Assembly (NCBI GenBank): GCA_040285825.1 | Contig: JAUPSS010000003.1 | Span: 1,798,001-1,862,000, forward strand | Length of the DNA: 64,000 nucleotides | Reading direction: 5' to 3' | Source: Eukaryota sp. TZLM1-RC | Lineage: Eukaryota; Protista; Metamonada: BaSk clade | Shown here: positions 5,803 through 64,000 of the stretch, one piece after another | How positions within the stretch are numbered: position 1 is the first letter of the stretch | Layout: every line of letters begins with the position of its first letter | Program-made: the position numbers and the translations under genes | The notes under the pieces: generated by a model | The model's input: only the letters and a program-made list of their open reading frames with translations | What the model was told of the DNA's origin: nothing | Databases searched by the model: none

Positions 5803-6477
5803 TTAATCAATATCTTTACTTCCAAAATTTGTAATGTAGTCTGAAACAAGACAATAGATACCATATTGATCAATTTGCATTCTATGCAAATGCTCACTAG
5901 AAGGAGAGTTGACGAGCTGCAAAAAACGCCGGAATAGTTTTTCTCCAATAAAATAAACACCCCAATTGATCAACCATGAAGGGACAAACATTGAAGGGTT
6001 CACTCCTAATATGGCTGCGGAAATCCTGAACTTTGAGGAAGATTCAGTAGTAAGTTTAAGGGCAATAGTCTCGATGTATCCATCAACAAATTGTTTATCT
6101 TGCTTCTCGGCATAAATACCTTTCGCCAAGGCCCCAACCATGGTATTACCGGGCTCATAAACAAGTTGAAGATGAAGTCGAAATCTTCGTGGTTTGAATA
6201 CTGGTAGCTTGATAGCAAATTCTATGGTGAGATCTAGAGGATGTGACATCTCAACCACTCTGGCAAACGTAACACAATCAAAATGTTGAGGCCAAAGATC
6301 TACTTCATAGAGAACAGATATCATGTTATGAAGACTACCAGTAACAACAGCATCCACCTGAACATCGTGGTGTAGTGAACGCCTATATCTTATAGCTATG
6401 TCTCCCTTATCCAACAGAACTGAAAAGTTGCTAGAATCTGTAAATATAGCTGCAATACATTGGCGAAGGCTCGCCAT
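5803..6477 (-). CDS. START/SRPBCC lipid-binding domain protein
   Basis: 224 aa ORF; pattern VLYEVDLWPQH..KLPVFKPR..NPSMFVPSWLINW typical of START domains. Confidence 0.72.
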   Translation of the reverse strand: MASLRQCIAAIFTDSSNFSVLLDKGDIAIRYRRSLHHDVQVDAVVTGSLHNMISVLYEVDLWPQHFDCVTFARVVEMSHPLDLTIEFAIKLPVFKPRRFRLHLQLVYEPGNTMVGALAKGIYAEKQDKQFVDGYIETIALKLTTESSSKFRISAAILGVNPSMFVPSWLINWGVYFIGEKLFRRFLQLVNSPSSEHLHRMQIDQYGIYCLVSDYITNFGSKDID

Positions 6478-6520
6478 TCTTATAGATGTTGTCTATAAGA
6501 ATGGAATAAGTGTCCTTTAC
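6474..6520 (-). promoter_or_regulatory. Upstream cassette family 1, copy a (AAAGGACAC box + perfect 13-bp hairpin covering the ATG)
   Basis: Sense strand: GTAAAGGACACTTATT CCATTCTTATAGA caaca TCTATAAGAATGG; homologous to copies at 54438, 57521 and 63948. Confidence 0.75.
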
Positions 6521-6849
6521 ACTGATGAAAAAGATGGAAAGGGACCTTGTTGTTTTTGAAAGATTTCTTTTTTGATGCAACTTTTGTTTTGATACTGTCT
6601 TTTAAGCGAAATTGATTTGACGATATTCTTCAATTTCATGCCATGTTGAAAACAGTATTTCTAATAGCATCATGTAAAGAAGAACGCCAAGCCATCAATT
6701 TAGAAAAACTGAGAGCATGACACAAGGTGACGTGGAGAGACTCCAACAGACATATTTTTCATTTAATAAGGATTGCTCAATTGGAATATTTGAATGGATT
6801 ATCATTTAGTTTAATCATAAGTTTTGTTATAAGCACATAATTTCTTTTC

Positions 6850-23245: not shown

Positions 23246-23353
23246 TGACTAACAGCACAAAAATGTCAAATGGTTGTAACTCGTGGAAATTACTGGAATA
23301 TGATGAAATGATTCTTGATCCTTTCAAGACTTCAGGTCTTTCGTTTCCTTTGA
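23246..23353 (-). promoter_or_regulatory. Upstream cassette family 2, copy a
   Basis: About 74% identical by manual alignment (one gap) to 50771-50879; both end at an ATG; stem-loop GTAATTT ccac GAGTTAC at 23276-23293. Confidence 0.7.
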
Positions 23354-50770: not shown

Positions 50771-50879
50771 TCAAAGGAAATGAAAAACCTCAAGATTTTG
50801 AAAACATCAACTTGATTCATTTCATATTCCAGTAATCTCAACGGGTTACTACTATTTGACTTTTTTGTGTTGCTACCCG
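50771..50879 (+). promoter_or_regulatory. Upstream cassette family 2, copy b
   Basis: Homologous to 23246-23353; stem-loop AGTAATCT caac GGGTTACT at 50831-50850; ends at ATG 50880. Confidence 0.7.
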
Positions 50880-51803
50880 ATGTCTTCCTTTGTTGACCTC
50901 TTCACTTATTGCGTACACCTAGCTAAAGTTGCCAACACTATTCTACGTAAAGCTGTTCGAGATGATGAAACTAAGGTTTTTGTCAAAGATGCTGCGACAG
51001 CCGACTTTGTTACCAGCGTTGATCTCCATGTGGAAACAATCATGGTTAATGCACTCAAATACAAATTTCCCTCTGTCAGGGTGATTGGTGAGGAGAGCAT
51101 AACAGCTGTGTCTACACCAATACCATCTGATTGTGACTTACCAGTGGAACCCCTATCATTGCCAAAGACTCTCCCAGAGTACGATCTCACCGATTTATGT
51201 ATTTGGCTGGATCCATTGGATGGAACATCATATTTTATCAAAAAGGAATATCATTCAGTTTGTTTTTTATTAGGAATATCATACAAAAACCGACCTATCG
51301 CTGGTATCATCACCCAACCCTTTGCTGATGTTGATTTCGACGTATGCTACGGTCTTCCAGGTATAGGAATGTTCTTTGATGGTAAGCAAGTTGAACCAAA
51401 GTTTCCACCATTAAATGAACTTGTAATTACCGTTTCAGACTCTCTAACGCAGTCCAATGTTGTTTATAAGACGATATCTCGTCTTGGTTATGCTCACTTG
51501 GTACATAACCATGGTACGGGTACGAAGTTCCTGACAGTGTGCAGGGGTCATTGCCATGCGTTTGTTCAGGCATTGGGGAGAACGAAGCGTTGGGATACTT
51601 GTGCAGGAGAAGCTTTAGTATTAGCAATTGGGGGATGTGCTACAGATCTTGATGGAAATCTCATCAACTATGATCCGAATGGGTCTTTTTTGAATGATAG
51701 AGGCATTGTTGCTCTTTCACCAGTGTTGTGTGAAGAGGGGAGGAGAAATGAGTTTTACGAACGATTGGACGTTCCTGCTGAGATTCCAGTCACATATAAG
51801 TAG
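50880..51803 (+). CDS. 3'(2'),5'-bisphosphate nucleotidase / inositol monophosphatase family (BPNT1-like)
   Basis: DFVTSVD, IGEE, IWLDPLDGT, GIITQPF, KRWDTCAGEA; first ATG at 50880. Confidence 0.92.
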   Translation: MSSFVDLFTYCVHLAKVANTILRKAVRDDETKVFVKDAATADFVTSVDLHVETIMVNALKYKFPSVRVIGEESITAVSTPIPSDCDLPVEPLSLPKTLPEYDLTDLCIWLDPLDGTSYFIKKEYHSVCFLLGISYKNRPIAGIITQPFADVDFDVCYGLPGIGMFFDGKQVEPKFPPLNELVITVSDSLTQSNVVYKTISRLGYAHLVHNHGTGTKFLTVCRGHCHAFVQALGRTKRWDTCAGEALVLAIGGCATDLDGNLINYDPNGSFLNDRGIVALSPVLCEEGRRNEFYERLDVPAEIPVTYK

Positions 51804-52425: not shown

Positions 52426-54441
52426 CTAATCAAACATTTTCAACTTTAATAAATCAGTATTGCCAATCCCAAAAACACTAGACAATTGGGTCATAAGCAA
52501 AGAACCAAGTGCCTTGAATTGTTTGACCGACTCAAATTGCTTTTGCTGAGTGTGAATCTTGACCAAAAGATAAATTCCATCAATGGCCTCTGCTCTAGTC
52601 AGATTTGAATCTTTGCAGATAAACGCATCAGAAACAATTTCTTCAACACCACTTTGCTCAATCAAATACAAATGCTCCCTATCATCATGGCCACTCAAAC
52701 CATAATTCTCCATTTTATTAACACAATCGACCACAAACGACAACACTTCTTCAGCTTCAGCGTACTGCTTGCAATGAAGAAGAACATCGGCCAGGTAGAT
52801 GCGAAGGTAGGGGATGTGGGGTCTTCTGGAATGTGCTAATTTACACAATTGACAAAATAACTCACAATTGATATCAATCTTGCGTTTTGATTCTACCCAT
52901 GCAGAATGGATGCTATACAGATGAGCAGGTAGCACGTGATAATCACAGTCAAGGTCAAAATCAGACCAATCATCCCGTGATGATGACGTTTGTTTGATTA
53001 CTTTGTAGGTAAAATTAATTGCTTCTTGAGATCTACCAACTGCTGTGAGTAAAGTAAACTCCATATGCCATTTTCTGAAAAAATCAATTTCCTCAGGTCT
53101 AACTCCAAAAACAGTATTCTGGCTACCAAAAAAATCTCCCTGAATGTCTTTTCTTACGGTGACGTTTCCAAAAGCATCATTTAAATTAAACACGAGCTTT
53201 GGAAACATTGGAGCGTAGCCAGGACCAGCTGAAAGAATACATTCTTCATTTTCCAAGTCAAAAACCACAGTTTCAAGACAATTCTCTTTACATACAGTAA
53301 CATTACCTAATCCTATATCAATCGATGACGTGTCAGTTGCCGGACAACAATCAGATAGAATTAAAAAAACGTCTCGGGAAGTCAATGCTGAATATTTCAC
53401 CTGATTGATAATCTGACATAATCGTAACCATCTCAACTCATTAAGCCTATGGACACTTTCCACCGTCCCCAAACCCCGCACAATCACGTCATCCATCACG
53501 TGATCATTGTGACCTACTGATGACGTAGCACCACGTGCCTCTTTTGTCAAATATCTATTGACAGCTGCTATTCTAATAGGTTCTTCGGGTAAAGTCCACG
53601 TCGCTGCTTTTTGATCATGTCCAAAATCCATGATGAACCCACTCTTCTCCTTCGGCGAACTCACGGCAACCATCCATCCAAAAACGGCAGAATGAGAAGT
53701 AAGAGCTGTGTGAACTTCTACAATGTTTTTACAAGTCATAAGAGCTTGCCGGCAGAAAAGAGCCATTGGTAAAACACCTTTTCGCTCAACAAAGTCACGT
53801 ATCACGTTGAGAGAAAGTGACATTGCTTGGTTGTCCTCTGTTTCCTCCACCCATCCTTGCAGGGCTCCAAGGCTGCCTAAAAATGTAATAAGGCCATGAG
53901 GAGGGTAGTTTGGAATGATGAAGCGGATAACGCAAGGAAAGCGTCCAAGAACAGACGGTTGATAGTCGAGGTTATGACCATGGATTCCTTGGGATTCTAG
54001 CTTGGAGTTTGGAGGGGAAATGAAGACCGAACATGAATGAGAAGCCTTTGGGGTCATTATCTCTGCTCCCATGGTACAGAAAAGGAGAGTGCGTAAGGAG
54101 ATTCCACTACCTTCTACAATACCATTGAGTTCAGACCGGAATGTGTCCGGTAAAGATTTGTAGGCTCTGTTCAGTCGCCATGAGAGTAAGAGTTTGGCAG
54201 CACTGCGTGTACCAACGGGAAAACTTGCTACTTTGGATTCAATGATAAAATTGACAAGTTCTTCAAGTTTAGAGAGTTCAGGTGTGAGAAGCTTTCCAAA
54301 ATCGTATCCACCAGCTTCAAAATCTACTGCTTTTATGGTGACAAAGGGGACATTGGCGTAAAAGACAACAAAAGAATCACCTGATGTACGTTTGAAACCA
54401 TCATCATGAGAATAAGGCTCAGAAAAAGATGTACTGATCAT
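52426..54441 (-). CDS. C45/AAT-family Ntn-hydrolase (acid ceramidase-like) with C-terminal TPR-like helices
   Basis: ELNGIVEG, S-C-SVF putative Cys nucleophile, IHGHNLDY, SLSLN, AAVNRY; 671 aa. Confidence 0.78.
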   Translation of the reverse strand: MISTSFSEPYSHDDGFKRTSGDSFVVFYANVPFVTIKAVDFEAGGYDFGKLLTPELSKLEELVNFIIESKVASFPVGTRSAAKLLLSWRLNRAYKSLPDTFRSELNGIVEGSGISLRTLLFCTMGAEIMTPKASHSCSVFISPPNSKLESQGIHGHNLDYQPSVLGRFPCVIRFIIPNYPPHGLITFLGSLGALQGWVEETEDNQAMSLSLNVIRDFVERKGVLPMALFCRQALMTCKNIVEVHTALTSHSAVFGWMVAVSSPKEKSGFIMDFGHDQKAATWTLPEEPIRIAAVNRYLTKEARGATSSVGHNDHVMDDVIVRGLGTVESVHRLNELRWLRLCQIINQVKYSALTSRDVFLILSDCCPATDTSSIDIGLGNVTVCKENCLETVVFDLENEECILSAGPGYAPMFPKLVFNLNDAFGNVTVRKDIQGDFFGSQNTVFGVRPEEIDFFRKWHMEFTLLTAVGRSQEAINFTYKVIKQTSSSRDDWSDFDLDCDYHVLPAHLYSIHSAWVESKRKIDINCELFCQLCKLAHSRRPHIPYLRIYLADVLLHCKQYAEAEEVLSFVVDCVNKMENYGLSGHDDREHLYLIEQSGVEEIVSDAFICKDSNLTRAEAIDGIYLLVKIHTQQKQFESVKQFKALGSLLMTQLSSVFGIGNTDLLKLKMFD

Positions 54442-54486
54442 TGAAACAGATGATGTCTATAACAATGAAATAAGTGTCCTTTTTAG
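54438..54486 (-). promoter_or_regulatory. Upstream cassette family 1, copy b
   Basis: Sense strand: CTAAAAAGGACACTTATT TCATTG TT ATAGA catca TCTGT TT CAATGA. Confidence 0.75.
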
Positions 54487-56189
54487 ACCGATGTAGAGGG
54501 ACTGAGTTTTTAAAAATAGAACTAAAATAAATAAAAATTAAATTTCTTTGAACCTTTCACAACCTTAACTCTATGTAGGTATCCTGATCTATCTCCACCA
54601 TTTACATGTGCTTCTATCACTGCCAACATATTCAGTAAAGCATTTCGATCTCTATTTTGCAAACTTTCGTATGATTTACATGGTAACCCCGTGACGAATA
54701 GACATCTCATGCCGCTTCCATGGCCTAGGATATCTGCACCATCGGAATGTTTCAACTGTTTTCTCCGCTTTCTTACAGTTGAAACAACATCAACCGATTG
54801 TTCCTTTTACACTATGGAGGAACTCATTTTCTTAAAAATTCTTAAAACAGTATTCTATAGGCTTAATTTGCAAACTTAAAGCCACTCAATCTCAACCAGG
54901 CCAGTGATGTGTTGGTCTTTTAGTAGGAGATTTTTTGTTGGAGGCATTTTGTAGACGTGTTGTGCTTTCATGACCTCAAATAGGTTTGGTTATTTATTGT
55001 TATTTTTTATTTTTATTTGGTTATTTTTCGGTTGTTTTTGTGTAATAAAACAAAACTTATCATTATATTTATGAGAGAGACATTCTTAATTTTTTGATTT
55101 AGTTGATAATCATTTTTGGTTATCATTTTCTATGTTTCCAACATCTATTATGGAAGAAGCCGAGATGATTGAAGTTTTCAATAAAAGTGACACTTAGATT
55201 TTGTAATTGCAATGTCTTGGGATTCTGAGAATCAGAATTCTATTAGCTACCATTCCCACAACAAAAATATTTGGTGTGATATGATACCGAAATTGCACCT
55301 AGTGATTCTATTTGAAAACAACATTCTATTACATCGACTTTTTGGCTGATTTAGTGGACCAAATGTTACATTCATTTCACTTTAAAGTTTAAACGAATTA
55401 ATTAGTCTTTAGATGAATCGTTTTCTTGCTAACAGTGCATATTGTAGAATAATTATTATTATCATATGAATACAACCTGACAACTCAGTGAATAATTTTT
55501 AGTTTCCAGAGGCAAGATAAGGTGATGTGTGATATGTTGTGACTCCTATACTCGACGTCATTTTATTCTACAATTTGCATGAATATATGAAGCAACAACT
55601 GTTGTGAAGCTTTGATTGAACTATTTGCTTGAAACTAAATTATTATCAGTGTCAGATTCTTTTGTTACTATCATTATTACAGCTTATAATATAACAATGC
55701 ACTTTCGCATTCGATATCTTTTTGTTGGTTTAAAGTTTAGGAACACCAACTTTTTTATTGATTTAGTTTCCTTCATTTGTGTTGTACAACAGCCATCATT
55801 AAGAGAACATTATGCTAAGTTGGATTCAAATTTCCTGACAATTGATCAATAAGAATATAAATTACGATTGTAAATGGGACATTGACACTTCCATATTCGT
55901 TTTTAGATCAAACCAGATATTAATATTAGTGATTGATTTTACTAAATTTGAATTCTTGTACATACAAAACCTTTTGTTCTGAACACAAGAATTATGAGGT
56001 TTAGTTTTGGAAATTGGTTTATTATTATATTTTTTTCCTTAAAAGTCATTTTCTTTTTTGAAAGAAGTCCATAACTAGGAAAAATTTGAGTAACTAAATC
56101 AGCAGCAGAACAAAGACGAAGGTCTTTCAAAATAGTTCGGCATAAAAATTTCAGTTTTGGCCAAGTTATGCCTTTCTTTATTTTTGAAT

Positions 56190-57170: not shown

Positions 57171-57520
57171 TATGTGTTTTAATTTGTTTTGTTCTGGTTT
57201 GTTTCTTCGAAGAATAATAAATAATTTTACTCCCACTCAAGAAAAAAAAGAATTTCTTCCGAAGAACTTTGTTAAGCTATATGTGAAAATTGAGAGAAAT
57301 CGAATAAGGAGTTGATTTTACAATGCCACTGATCAATGGTCCAGGATATTTTCCAATTGAAACGAGGACAATAACGACAATTGAACAACAAACATTCATG
57401 GACGATTTTCTGCCTGACCAGAGATTGAAAATGGTCATTACACAATTAGCATCTTTGTGGTTGCTATACTTCGGCAAATTGTGGCCATAAGGGAATTTCC
57501 CACTTCTCATTGCATCTTTT

Positions 57521-57573
57521 AAAAGGACACACATCTCATTGTTATAAACAAATTTCTTTACGAATGACAATGA
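57521..57573 (+). promoter_or_regulatory. Upstream cassette family 1, copy c (diverged)
   Basis: AAAAGGACAC ACATC TCATTGTTAT AAAC...; TCATTGTTAT (57536-57545) can pair with ATGACAATGA (57564-57573), covering both ATGs. Confidence 0.62.
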
Positions 57574-58748
57574 CACTCCGTTCAGGCAGGACTCATGGGG
57601 CTTCGTCATCCAACATATGTTGCTTTTGTACTGCATGTGATTCTGAAACGACTATCTATATGACTCACTTCCATGAACCCCTTGTTGCTCGATTACCAGC
57701 TAAATCAATAGTACCCGTCTCCTTTTCTTGTCCTAAATGCCAGGACTTTTTTCCTTCTATTTCTTCTTTAATCACCCATCTAGATCTCTGTTATACCACT
57801 TCTGATCCTGCCTTACTTCCAGCCCAATGTCTCATCATCAAATGTCTCCCTTGTGGAATGTCATTCCAGCTTAGTTCTGTCTCCCGTCATCTCTCCCAAT
57901 GTCCATCTTCCCTACTCACCACCCCTTCTACCAACACCTTACCCAGCGCCTCTCCACCTTCCAAAAAGCCTCGACTGGACAACAGGGTACAAGACAAGAC
58001 AGAGAATGGCAAGAAATTCTGTTGTTTTGTCCATTGCAAAGGTTCTTACACAAGGTCTGGCCTCATCCAACACATACGGGATGCCCATCCAGCACAGCTA
58101 TTATCAAGTGGTGGTACTGATGTTCCGAGTAACTTTACCCCATGTAAGGATAAGGTAGTTTGCGCACTCTGTACAGGGAAAGTATTGGTGGATAAACAAT
58201 TGGCCGTTGACCACATTGTTGATGTACATTTGTCAAGCAATTATGTACCTTTGATTGGTTCAAAAAAGAGTAAAAAACTGCCTAGAGCGGCGTTTTATCA
58301 ACGCTATCTTTGTAGATGTGGGTATTATGCTCATTTAGATGATGATATTACTCGTCACCAGTGCAAGTTGAAATGTCCTTATTGCTCCTTTCAATCTGCT
58401 GAAGTCGATCAGAATTTTGTTGATCACGTGACTAGAAATCACTCCCAAATGTGCATCAAAGAGGTGGTTAAACTTGACGTTCCAAAATCTATTGAGTCTT
58501 TCGTCAAATCTCAAGACTCTGGACCTTGTAAAAATCCGCTATTTAATTGTTCCCAGTGCTCCTTTTCTGCTAATATCCAGCAGTTGGTCACGCACCTTAT
58601 CAAGGATCACTCGGATGGTAAAGCTAAGTTGGTGTACCAGCAACCACCGCCTGCCTTCTCTTGTGTGTTGTGTAATCAGGCTCTCAAAGTGAAGAATGCT
58701 ACCGGGCTATTGGATCATTTCAAGTCGTTTCACAGAATGAGTGTTTAA
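57564..58748 (+). CDS. Multi-zinc-finger protein, paralog of 41688-44399
   Basis: CCFCTAC..SFSCPKC..KCLPCG..; ends HFKSFHRMSV versus HFKTFHRMSV; first ATG at 57564. Confidence 0.85.
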   Translation: MTMTLRSGRTHGASSSNICCFCTACDSETTIYMTHFHEPLVARLPAKSIVPVSFSCPKCQDFFPSISSLITHLDLCYTTSDPALLPAQCLIIKCLPCGMSFQLSSVSRHLSQCPSSLLTTPSTNTLPSASPPSKKPRLDNRVQDKTENGKKFCCFVHCKGSYTRSGLIQHIRDAHPAQLLSSGGTDVPSNFTPCKDKVVCALCTGKVLVDKQLAVDHIVDVHLSSNYVPLIGSKKSKKLPRAAFYQRYLCRCGYYAHLDDDITRHQCKLKCPYCSFQSAEVDQNFVDHVTRNHSQMCIKEVVKLDVPKSIESFVKSQDSGPCKNPLFNCSQCSFSANIQQLVTHLIKDHSDGKAKLVYQQPPPAFSCVLCNQALKVKNATGLLDHFKSFHRMSV

Positions 58749-63223: not shown

Positions 63224-63952
63224 TTACTGCCTTCGTCTACGTCCAAGTCGATAATCACCAATAGTGATAAACGCCACAGAGAACAGTCCATAAACAATGC
63301 TAGACACTGTTCGAATGAACAACTGATTGCTGATGAGTGGAGCAAATAGTGTAACTGAATTAGAAATAAAATGTGCAATAACCCCAGGAAGATAAGTCCC
63401 GGAATGCAGAGCAAATGCGGCTTGAGACCAGCTAAATGTTAGAATAGCAAATACTGCAGTAACTTTAGAATGATCCAATGCTATTGTATCTGAATGTGCC
63501 ATTAACTGAAGAGTGATCAACATGCCATAAACAGTTCTGTTAGACCAATACTTCTTGAGATAAAACACCACGACTCCTGTAAAGAAGAATTCTTCGCTGA
63601 TAGCAGGAAGTATAGCATTCTGGAATAGTTGAACAGGATCAATGTTTGATAGAGACACACATTTTGGACAAATGTGGTGGACAGCAGCGAGGGAGAGCAT
63701 AGGATAAAGTGAAAGAATTGTCCACATAAACGTAGGAATAAATCGAACTCGCAATCGTGGTATACTCAGGAATTTACGTAGAGCAAGACAGGCTGAAGGA
63801 ATTATTCCCAACATTAAAAGAGATTTAATTAGTAGTGAGAGATGTGGACCAAAGCTATCTGCATATAATGAGCCGAAAGCGTTGAGAAATGCATATGCTG
63901 TAAATATAGCATAAGTGATGATCAACGAATGAAGTGTCGTTAATATGTTCAT
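63224..63952 (-). CDS. CAAX protease-like (CPBP/Abi/Rce1 family) membrane protein
   Basis: PAISEEFFFTG, LMAH and VIAHFISN motifs; multiple TM helices. Confidence 0.82.
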   Translation of the reverse strand: MNILTTLHSLIITYAIFTAYAFLNAFGSLYADSFGPHLSLLIKSLLMLGIIPSACLALRKFLSIPRLRVRFIPTFMWTILSLYPMLSLAAVHHICPKCVSLSNIDPVQLFQNAILPAISEEFFFTGVVVFYLKKYWSNRTVYGMLITLQLMAHSDTIALDHSKVTAVFAILTFSWSQAAFALHSGTYLPGVIAHFISNSVTLFAPLISNQLFIRTVSSIVYGLFSVAFITIGDYRLGRRRRQ

Positions 63953-64000
63953 TGTGATAGATGTTGTCTATAATATGAATATGAATAGAGTGTGTTTTTC
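63948..64000 (-). promoter_or_regulatory. Upstream cassette family 1, copy d
   Basis: Sense strand: GAAAAACACACTCTATTCATATTCATATT ATAGA caaca TCTAT CACAATGAA; ATG 9 nt after the loop, as in copies a and b. Confidence 0.68.

Follow-up and report, generated by a model that had tools for sequence, protein, structure and literature searches.

At least five unrelated genes of Skoliomonas litria strain TZLM1-RC, a free-living soda-lake metamonad, carry immediately before their start codons a copy of one discrete, dispersed cassette of about 70-85 bp, which we call family 1. We propose, with moderate confidence, that this cassette is a candidate proximal promoter together with a short 5' leader and that it is probably of mobile origin. 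The cassette comprises an upstream box GTCCCYYTMCATC, then a box AAAGGACAC, an initiator-like YCATT that lies about 25 nt from the start codon, and a TATA-like TTATAGA; the last of these forms the left half of an inverted repeat whose right half runs into A-ATG-R. In this proposal a mobile or other copy-and-paste process would have brought the cassette to its genes, transcription would start at or near YCATT, and it would be chiefly for its promoter sequence that the left arm of the repeat is retained. As for the complementarity to the start-codon region, it would be either the retained terminal hairpin of a parent element or a modest leader structure.

Five copies of a discrete cassette

We analyzed a window of 64,000 nucleotides (bases 1798001-1862000 of contig JAUPSS010000003.1, assembly GCA_040285825.1), in which an earlier note had reported homologous DNA upstream of four genes; all four copies were located where it had put them. 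Copy a (6470-6547, minus strand) consists of box0 GTCCCTTTCCATC (6545-6533), box1 AAAGGACAC (6518-6510, exact), a left arm CCATTCTTATAGA that contains the initiator-like CCATT (6504-6492), the loop CAACA (6491-6487) and a right arm (6486-6474) inside which the ATG lies (6477-6475). Copy b (54434-54504, minus strand) has the same layout, with box0 at 54502-54490, an exact box1 at 54482-54474, the left arm TCATTGTTATAGA at 54468-54456, the loop CATCA at 54455-54451 and the right arm at 54450-54438, the ATG being at 54441-54439. Copy c (57492-57571, plus strand) is the most diverged; its box1 (57522-57530) is again exact, its left arm TCATTGTTATAAA lies at 57536-57548, and its right arm (57554-57567, with a bulged G at 57562) runs through the ATG at 57564-57566, with a second ATG after it at 57570-57572. 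Copy d (63945-64000, minus strand) is incomplete at the window end, the full copy being present in two fetched loci (L003 12396-12471 and L002 2935-3008). The earlier note had given copy d a variant of the box that is exact in a, b and c, and the box does read AAAAACACAC there (63999-63990); TTCATA is duplicated in this copy, followed by TTATAGA (63973-63967), the loop (63966-63962) and the ATG (63952-63950). We found a fifth full copy, e, by sequence alone in about 95 kb of further sequence from this genome, sampled as loci around Fanzor genes; it lies on contig JAUPSS010000002.1 (L109 20815-20890, minus strand), 4 nt before an ATG.

The shared block had been put at about 45-50 nt, and alignment of longer flanks extended it to about 70-85 nt, including the upstream box GTCCCYYTMCATC. 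Its 5' edge is sharp and common to the copies, since local alignment found no similarity between any pair of copies in the next 300 nt upstream of that box. At the 3' side, conservation ends at TCTRT, followed by 4 differing nucleotides (5 in c) and then by A-ATG, so that all five copies end 4-5 nt before the ATG in a single register. The distance from loop to ATG was claimed to be 9 nt in a, b and d, which is correct and also holds for e; it is 10 nt in c. Runs of 35 nt are 91% identical between copies. Convergence cannot account for a block of this length and similarity, so the copies share descent and the block was copied. As would be expected of a MITE or PATE, there are several dispersed copies with defined ends, both edges being common to them.

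Searches for further copies returned the known ones. With nhmmer, the window and 12 kb beyond it yielded the four copies only, without weak or intermediate matches. The earlier note had also proposed a covariance-model scan, and we built such a model from the five copies with the hairpin as structure and ran it over about 171 kb from strain TZLM1-RC and 66 kb from the relatives GEM-RC1 and TZLM3-RCL (about 245 kb in total). The five copies scored 67-84 bits (a 80.3, b 84.4, c 69.9, full copy d 66.8), all of them 4-5 nt before an ATG, and everything else scored 22 bits or less; these runners-up are antisense palindromes of the copies themselves, and no match was found in the 66 kb from the two relatives. 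Because both nhmmer and the covariance model recover the copies alone, with a wide score gap to noise, the homology exceeds chance. Matches to the cassette core in public metagenome and viral contigs (91 and 5 single hits, respectively) were attributed to chance, since none extends past the searched pattern. An Rfam scan of the window at gathering thresholds gave 0 hits, and a permissive scan of 6400-6600 gave sub-threshold noise only. A C/D-box snoRNA-like match holding TGATGA was seen at 6516-6591 on the plus strand, opposite to copy a; it was rejected at 23.5 bits against a threshold of 48, and the other copies do not have it.

Full copies are present on JAUPSS010000003.1 and JAUPSS010000002.1, and a partial copy on JAUPSS010000001.1 brings the number of contigs to three. 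A diverged partial relative (AGGAACCCTTATTTCATT, L107 5716-5751) lies 19 nt before the ATG of Skp1 and matches box1 and the initiator part at 15 of 18 positions, without the hairpin and without the TTATAGA palindrome.

Carrier genes

The carrier genes had been described as unrelated, and the five proteins indeed show no relation to each other and no shared function. Three of the five have no Pfam domain, and two of these (a and e) are orphans. Gene a (5803-6477, minus strand) is a called gene whose 224-aa ORF begins 4 nt beyond the conserved block; it matched no Pfam family, and a word search of 5.8 billion proteins found no homologue. Gene b (52426-54441, minus strand; 671 aa) is conserved in the Skoliomonas group and has no Pfam domain above cut-off. 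The labels START for gene a and C45 hydrolase for gene b therefore lack Pfam support. Gene c (57564-58748, plus strand; 394 aa), which had been called a zinc-finger gene, is rich in Cys and His and gives weak C2H2-type hits only, and gene d (63224-63952, minus strand; 242 aa) was correctly recognized as a CAAX protease, being a member of the Rce1-like family (PF02517, E 1e-6). Gene e (L109 19998-20822, minus strand) is a 274-aa ORF.

Orthologues of gene b are present in GEM-RC1 (49% identity) and TZLM3-RCL (39%), and because their N-termini align with that of gene b to within 2-3 residues, we take its ATG to be the true start. The promoters of both orthologues are without the cassette, which points to a gain of the cassette at gene b within the S. 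litria lineage. In TZLM3-RCL, the 13-mer AAAAGGACACTTA, which exactly matches box1 and 3 further nt in copies a and b, occurs 140 nt upstream of the gene b orthologue (L006 9856-9870), where about 2e-5 occurrences would be expected by chance in that spacer; it could be an old factor site or a chance match.

An inverted repeat that reaches the start codon

Every copy retains the inverted repeat. The arms of copy a form a perfect 13-bp stem, as the earlier note had stated, and in one common register 12 of the 13 pairs are kept in e, 11 in b (including one G.U), 11 in d if a 5-nt bulge is allowed, and 10 in c, with one bulged G. Copy c had been assigned a different stem over its tandem ATGs; RNAfold does prefer an alternative 10-bp stem to the second ATG, but the common register is retained there as well. 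Over the five copies, 87.7% of the cells are paired, against 33-52% when the partners are slid. The pairing also extends to bases that lie outside the evidently conserved block. The base at -1 is A in 5 of 5 copies (36% background in 47 other starts), and the base at +4 is complementary to the base before CAT in 5 of 5 (background about 26-47%). The pair at columns 62/82 covaries, being C-G in a and G-C in b, c and e. The loop sequence is variable (CAACA, CATCA, CAATA, CAAAT). Fold stability is modest except in a, with z-scores of -5.7 (a, -16.9 kcal/mol), -2.35 (e), -2.3 (d), -1.9 (b) and -1.5 (c). We rejected the idea that gene starts generally pair with an upstream CAT: among 41 other starts, ATG-containing stems of at least 5 bp numbered 9 versus 8.4 expected and those of at least 7 bp numbered 3 versus 1.5 expected, which is no excess. 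The ATG-containing hairpin is specific to the cassette.

Three pairs have changed on both sides, a number that was reached by 17 of 500 shuffles (n=5 sequences, with two of the three double changes in copy a alone). There are as many A.C cells (two, in c and d) as G.U cells (two, in b and e, one shared event), so wobble shows no strand preference. Of the 13 columns in each arm, 4 vary on the left and 7 on the right, which argues that the left arm is under sequence-specific constraint beyond the fold, and the right half of the palindrome is broken in b, c and d.

The earlier note had offered two readings of the repeat, a start-codon-occluding leader RNA and a portable promoter cassette. The latter fits better, because the family is discrete, is spread over three contigs, keeps a fixed ATG register and carries a YCATT that is enriched upstream of other genes. 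Sequestration of the AUG at the RNA level by the cassette hairpin is possible, and we put it no higher because the left arm is the more conserved, the double changes are mostly in copy a and wobble has no strand preference. Its fullest form would be a translational operator, in which the transcribed hairpin sequesters the AUG, a factor opens or stabilizes it, and the carrier genes form a translational regulon; we regard this as unlikely. The retention of 10-13 of 13 pairs in all five copies, the excess of pairing over slid partners, the three two-sided changes, the A at -1 with a complementary +4, and the similar fold of copy e, which was found by sequence alone (z -2.35), are all in its favor, and a transcript that began at the A of YCATT would include 11 of the 13 pairs. 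Double changes confined to one copy, however, could arise by quasipalindrome-templated mutation, and G.U cells do not outnumber A.C cells while the right arm evolves faster than the left. The stems of c and d are also weak (-7.2 and -3.8 kcal/mol, respectively), no Rfam family matches, the carrier genes have no common function, and the Skp1 relative is without the hairpin.

Initiator-like promoter content

The promoter reading rests in part on the motif that opens the left arm about 25 nt before the ATG, which is CCATT in a, TCATT in b, c and e, and TCATA in d. Upstream of 28 other S. litria genes, we counted YCATT on the sense strand 13 times between -40 and -5, versus about 4 expected (background 0.0041 per nt), that is, with positional enrichment. 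In Trichomonas, the initiator HCAHW is found no more than 30 nt from the ATG and determines where transcription begins (PMC7370421), and the cassette motif agrees with this consensus and distance. Given this parallel and the enrichment, an initiator role for YCATT is plausible. With transcription beginning at that A, the mRNA would contain 11 of the 13 pairs right from its 5' end; a start closer to the ATG would leave the whole left arm out of the transcript. RNA-seq was used for annotation in the S. litria genome paper (PMC11316075). Upstream of CAF1A (L109 11890-11935), the host DNA between the end of a Fanzor element and the ATG reads CCTTATAAGCAATATTTCTCA and resembles the family-1 part TTATAGACAAYATCT. 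It may be that promoters more widely have a TATA-like element about 15-20 nt ahead of the ATG.

Mobile elements and other upstream cassettes

To place the cassette in its genome, we performed an all-vs-all comparison of the upstream 110 nt of 52 gene starts. Upstream DNA is shared by five genes of family 1, three genes of a second family and at least five genes with Fanzor tails, so about a quarter of the sampled starts carry upstream DNA common to an unrelated gene, and on this account we consider the spread of cassettes a habit of this genome. The ATG register is fixed in families 1 and 2, whereas that of the Fanzor tails shifts. Family 2 has at least three copies in the same register, upstream of a 302-aa ORF (window 23246-23353, minus strand), of an inositol monophosphatase gene (window 50800-50882, plus strand) and, on another contig, of a RalGAP gene (L106 7527-7600, minus strand). 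The genes all start with ATGTC, and an 8-9 bp TTGACATT/AATGTCAA stem covers the start codon in two of the three copies, the CAT and with it the pairing being lost at the monophosphatase gene.

Fanzor proteins were found in strain TZLM1-RC, and several Fanzor tails lie a short way upstream of host start codons. Three copies of one subfamily (i) end at the same ...GTGTGAAATTCTCAGA, followed by 26, 6 and 27 nt to unrelated host ATGs: those of an RBBP4-like gene (L103 4868-5012), of a gene for an Ala_racemase_N protein, at which almost no host upstream DNA is left (L108 18116-18250, minus strand), and of CAF1A (L109 11793-11938). In a different subfamily, a hairpin of 9 bp lies 13 nt upstream of an ATG (L107). 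The family-1 cassette is absent from seven Fanzor tails of at least four subfamilies (L003, L103, L106, L107, two in L108, and L109), and we reject it as a Fanzor right end for the families fetched, as no tail resembles it. A tblastn search of the window with 8 Fanzor proteins gave no match, and no remnant was found upstream of a, b or c; none of the copies was found downstream of a same-strand Fanzor ORF or remnant, the remnant near d being on the opposite strand. Past the right end of the window (L003 8035-12397), the whole 4.4-kb spacer that separates cassette d from an Arf gene consists of a single Fanzor element, on the same strand as the Arf gene and interrupted by an RLE-type LINE. Because this Fanzor is on the strand opposite to gene d, with its 3' end facing the Arf gene, cassette d flanks its left side. 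A Fanzor-like C-terminus with an RD..A..N-like motif upstream of b (54525-54800, minus strand) was rejected as not significant (hhalign E 0.028, probability 1.7%), and hmmsearch, Pfam and PDB gave nothing for it.

Other candidate parents fared no better. The LINE upstream of copy a is 3'-truncated at 6620, and it was rejected as the parent since six other copies of this LINE continue with coding sequence past that point; the break is a deletion junction, 73 nt from cassette a. Terminal inverted repeats, a parent element and a transposase were sought and none was found, and a search with an LTR-retrotransposon protein for more of the genome returned only the window itself. Repeats of 3-4 nt flank copies a, d and e and fail in b and c, so they were not accepted as target-site duplications; the supposed flank repeat CTCA of copy b is part of the homology between b and e.

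These observations bear on a further alternative, in which the cassette would be a solo right end, left behind when the body of a mobile element was deleted; that element would have docked at start codons by a Fanzor/TnpB or IS200/IS605-like logic, its subterminal hairpin and a CATT guide pairing with AATG at the junction. We consider this rather unlikely. In IS200/IS605 elements a guide pairs with the cleavage site, and the order of CATT, hairpin, short linker and AATG in the cassette is similar; the covarying columns 62/82 and the Fanzor tails that adjoin host ATGs in this genome (at 6, 26 and 27 nt, and at 13 nt in the hairpin case) would also fit. However, the cassette has no similarity to the Fanzor tails examined and no transposase was found; copy d alone has a Fanzor nearby, which lies on the other strand and points towards the Arf gene; the motif before copy b fell short of significance; and the five copies have the same 5' edge, unlike random deletion remnants. 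Still more speculative, and in our judgment improbable, is the idea of a mobile element that chooses its start codons through base pairing and of which the cassette would be the terminal module. A YCATT guide inside the module, beside a subterminal hairpin, would then pair with A-ATG-R, and the element would land in a fixed register at gene starts, giving the gene a new promoter. If this were true, the alternation of C-G and T-A at column 52/+4 and of C-G and G-C at -2 would record guide-target matching.

Discussion

Our proposal of a copied promoter cassette draws on its discreteness, its sharp 5' edge, a register that is fixed in all pairwise matches, the YCATT motif and the asymmetry of the arms, as well as on the partial copy at Skp1, which retains box1 and the initiator part without the hairpin. 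Several observations count against it. Searches revealed neither a parent element nor terminal inverted repeats nor consistent target-site duplications, the seven Fanzor tails are without the cassette, and no Fanzor remnant was found upstream of a, b or c. A fixed distance of 4-5 nt to the ATG is hard to obtain by untargeted insertion followed by selection. In addition, the pairing in all five copies, including positions -1 and +4, and the well-kept hairpin of copy e suggest that the fold itself is constrained, which a pure promoter reading does not predict. The translational operator and the solo element end are each compatible with promoter use. A last alternative, in which a dimeric factor binds the DNA palindrome TTATAGA-N5-TCTATAA of a special promoter class and the match to the start codon is incidental, is very unlikely: copy a has a perfect palindrome and copy e a good one, the conserved upstream boxes suggest protein-binding sites and AAAAGGACACTTA recurs upstream of the TZLM3-RCL orthologue of gene b, but the half-sites are unequally conserved, with the right one broken in three copies, the pairing reaches past the palindrome to the flanks of the ATG, and convergence cannot give the long, nearly identical runs, so that copying would still be needed.

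To our knowledge, the promoters of free-living metamonads are essentially undescribed, and the family-1 cassette is a concrete candidate for a promoter and leader module in Skoliomonas. A sizeable share of the genes of this genome have upstream DNA that was copied from elsewhere, about 8% of the sampled starts for family 1 and about 25% for all cassette families together. The exact ATG register and the pairing need explaining under any model, and either a targeting rule of a mobile element or a selected leader structure would be new for this organism group.

Among known systems, the initiator promoters of Trichomonas vaginalis and other metamonads share with the cassette a short HCAHW or YCATT motif within about 30 nt of the ATG, and their 5' UTRs are short (PMC7370421). 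The cassette differs from them in that the motif is embedded in a 70-85 nt block of common descent, with an inverted repeat that reaches the start codon. Operators of the iron-responsive element type likewise place a hairpin near the 5' end or start codon of several mRNAs, whereas in the cassette the loop is variable, the genes have no theme and the stem stability is very uneven. The ends of IS200/IS605 elements and PATEs are, like the cassette, small dispersed units with a subterminal hairpin and a short 5' foot sequence complementary to the 3' site (CATT/AATG); the cassette is eukaryotic, and the likeness is one of architecture only, as no Y1 transposase, left end or target motif was identified. 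The Fanzor right ends of the same genome also lie directly upstream of a host ATG in the same orientation, some of them with a terminal hairpin, and supply the upstream DNA of the host gene, but the cassette has no similarity to them, is without an adjacent Fanzor ORF and keeps a fixed register where the tails of Fanzor subfamily (i) vary from 6 to 27 nt. The family-2 cassette is unrelated in sequence, and its copy at the monophosphatase gene has no pairing; it resembles family 1 in lying upstream of unrelated genes, in its fixed ATG register and in the pairing of its own arms onto the start codon.
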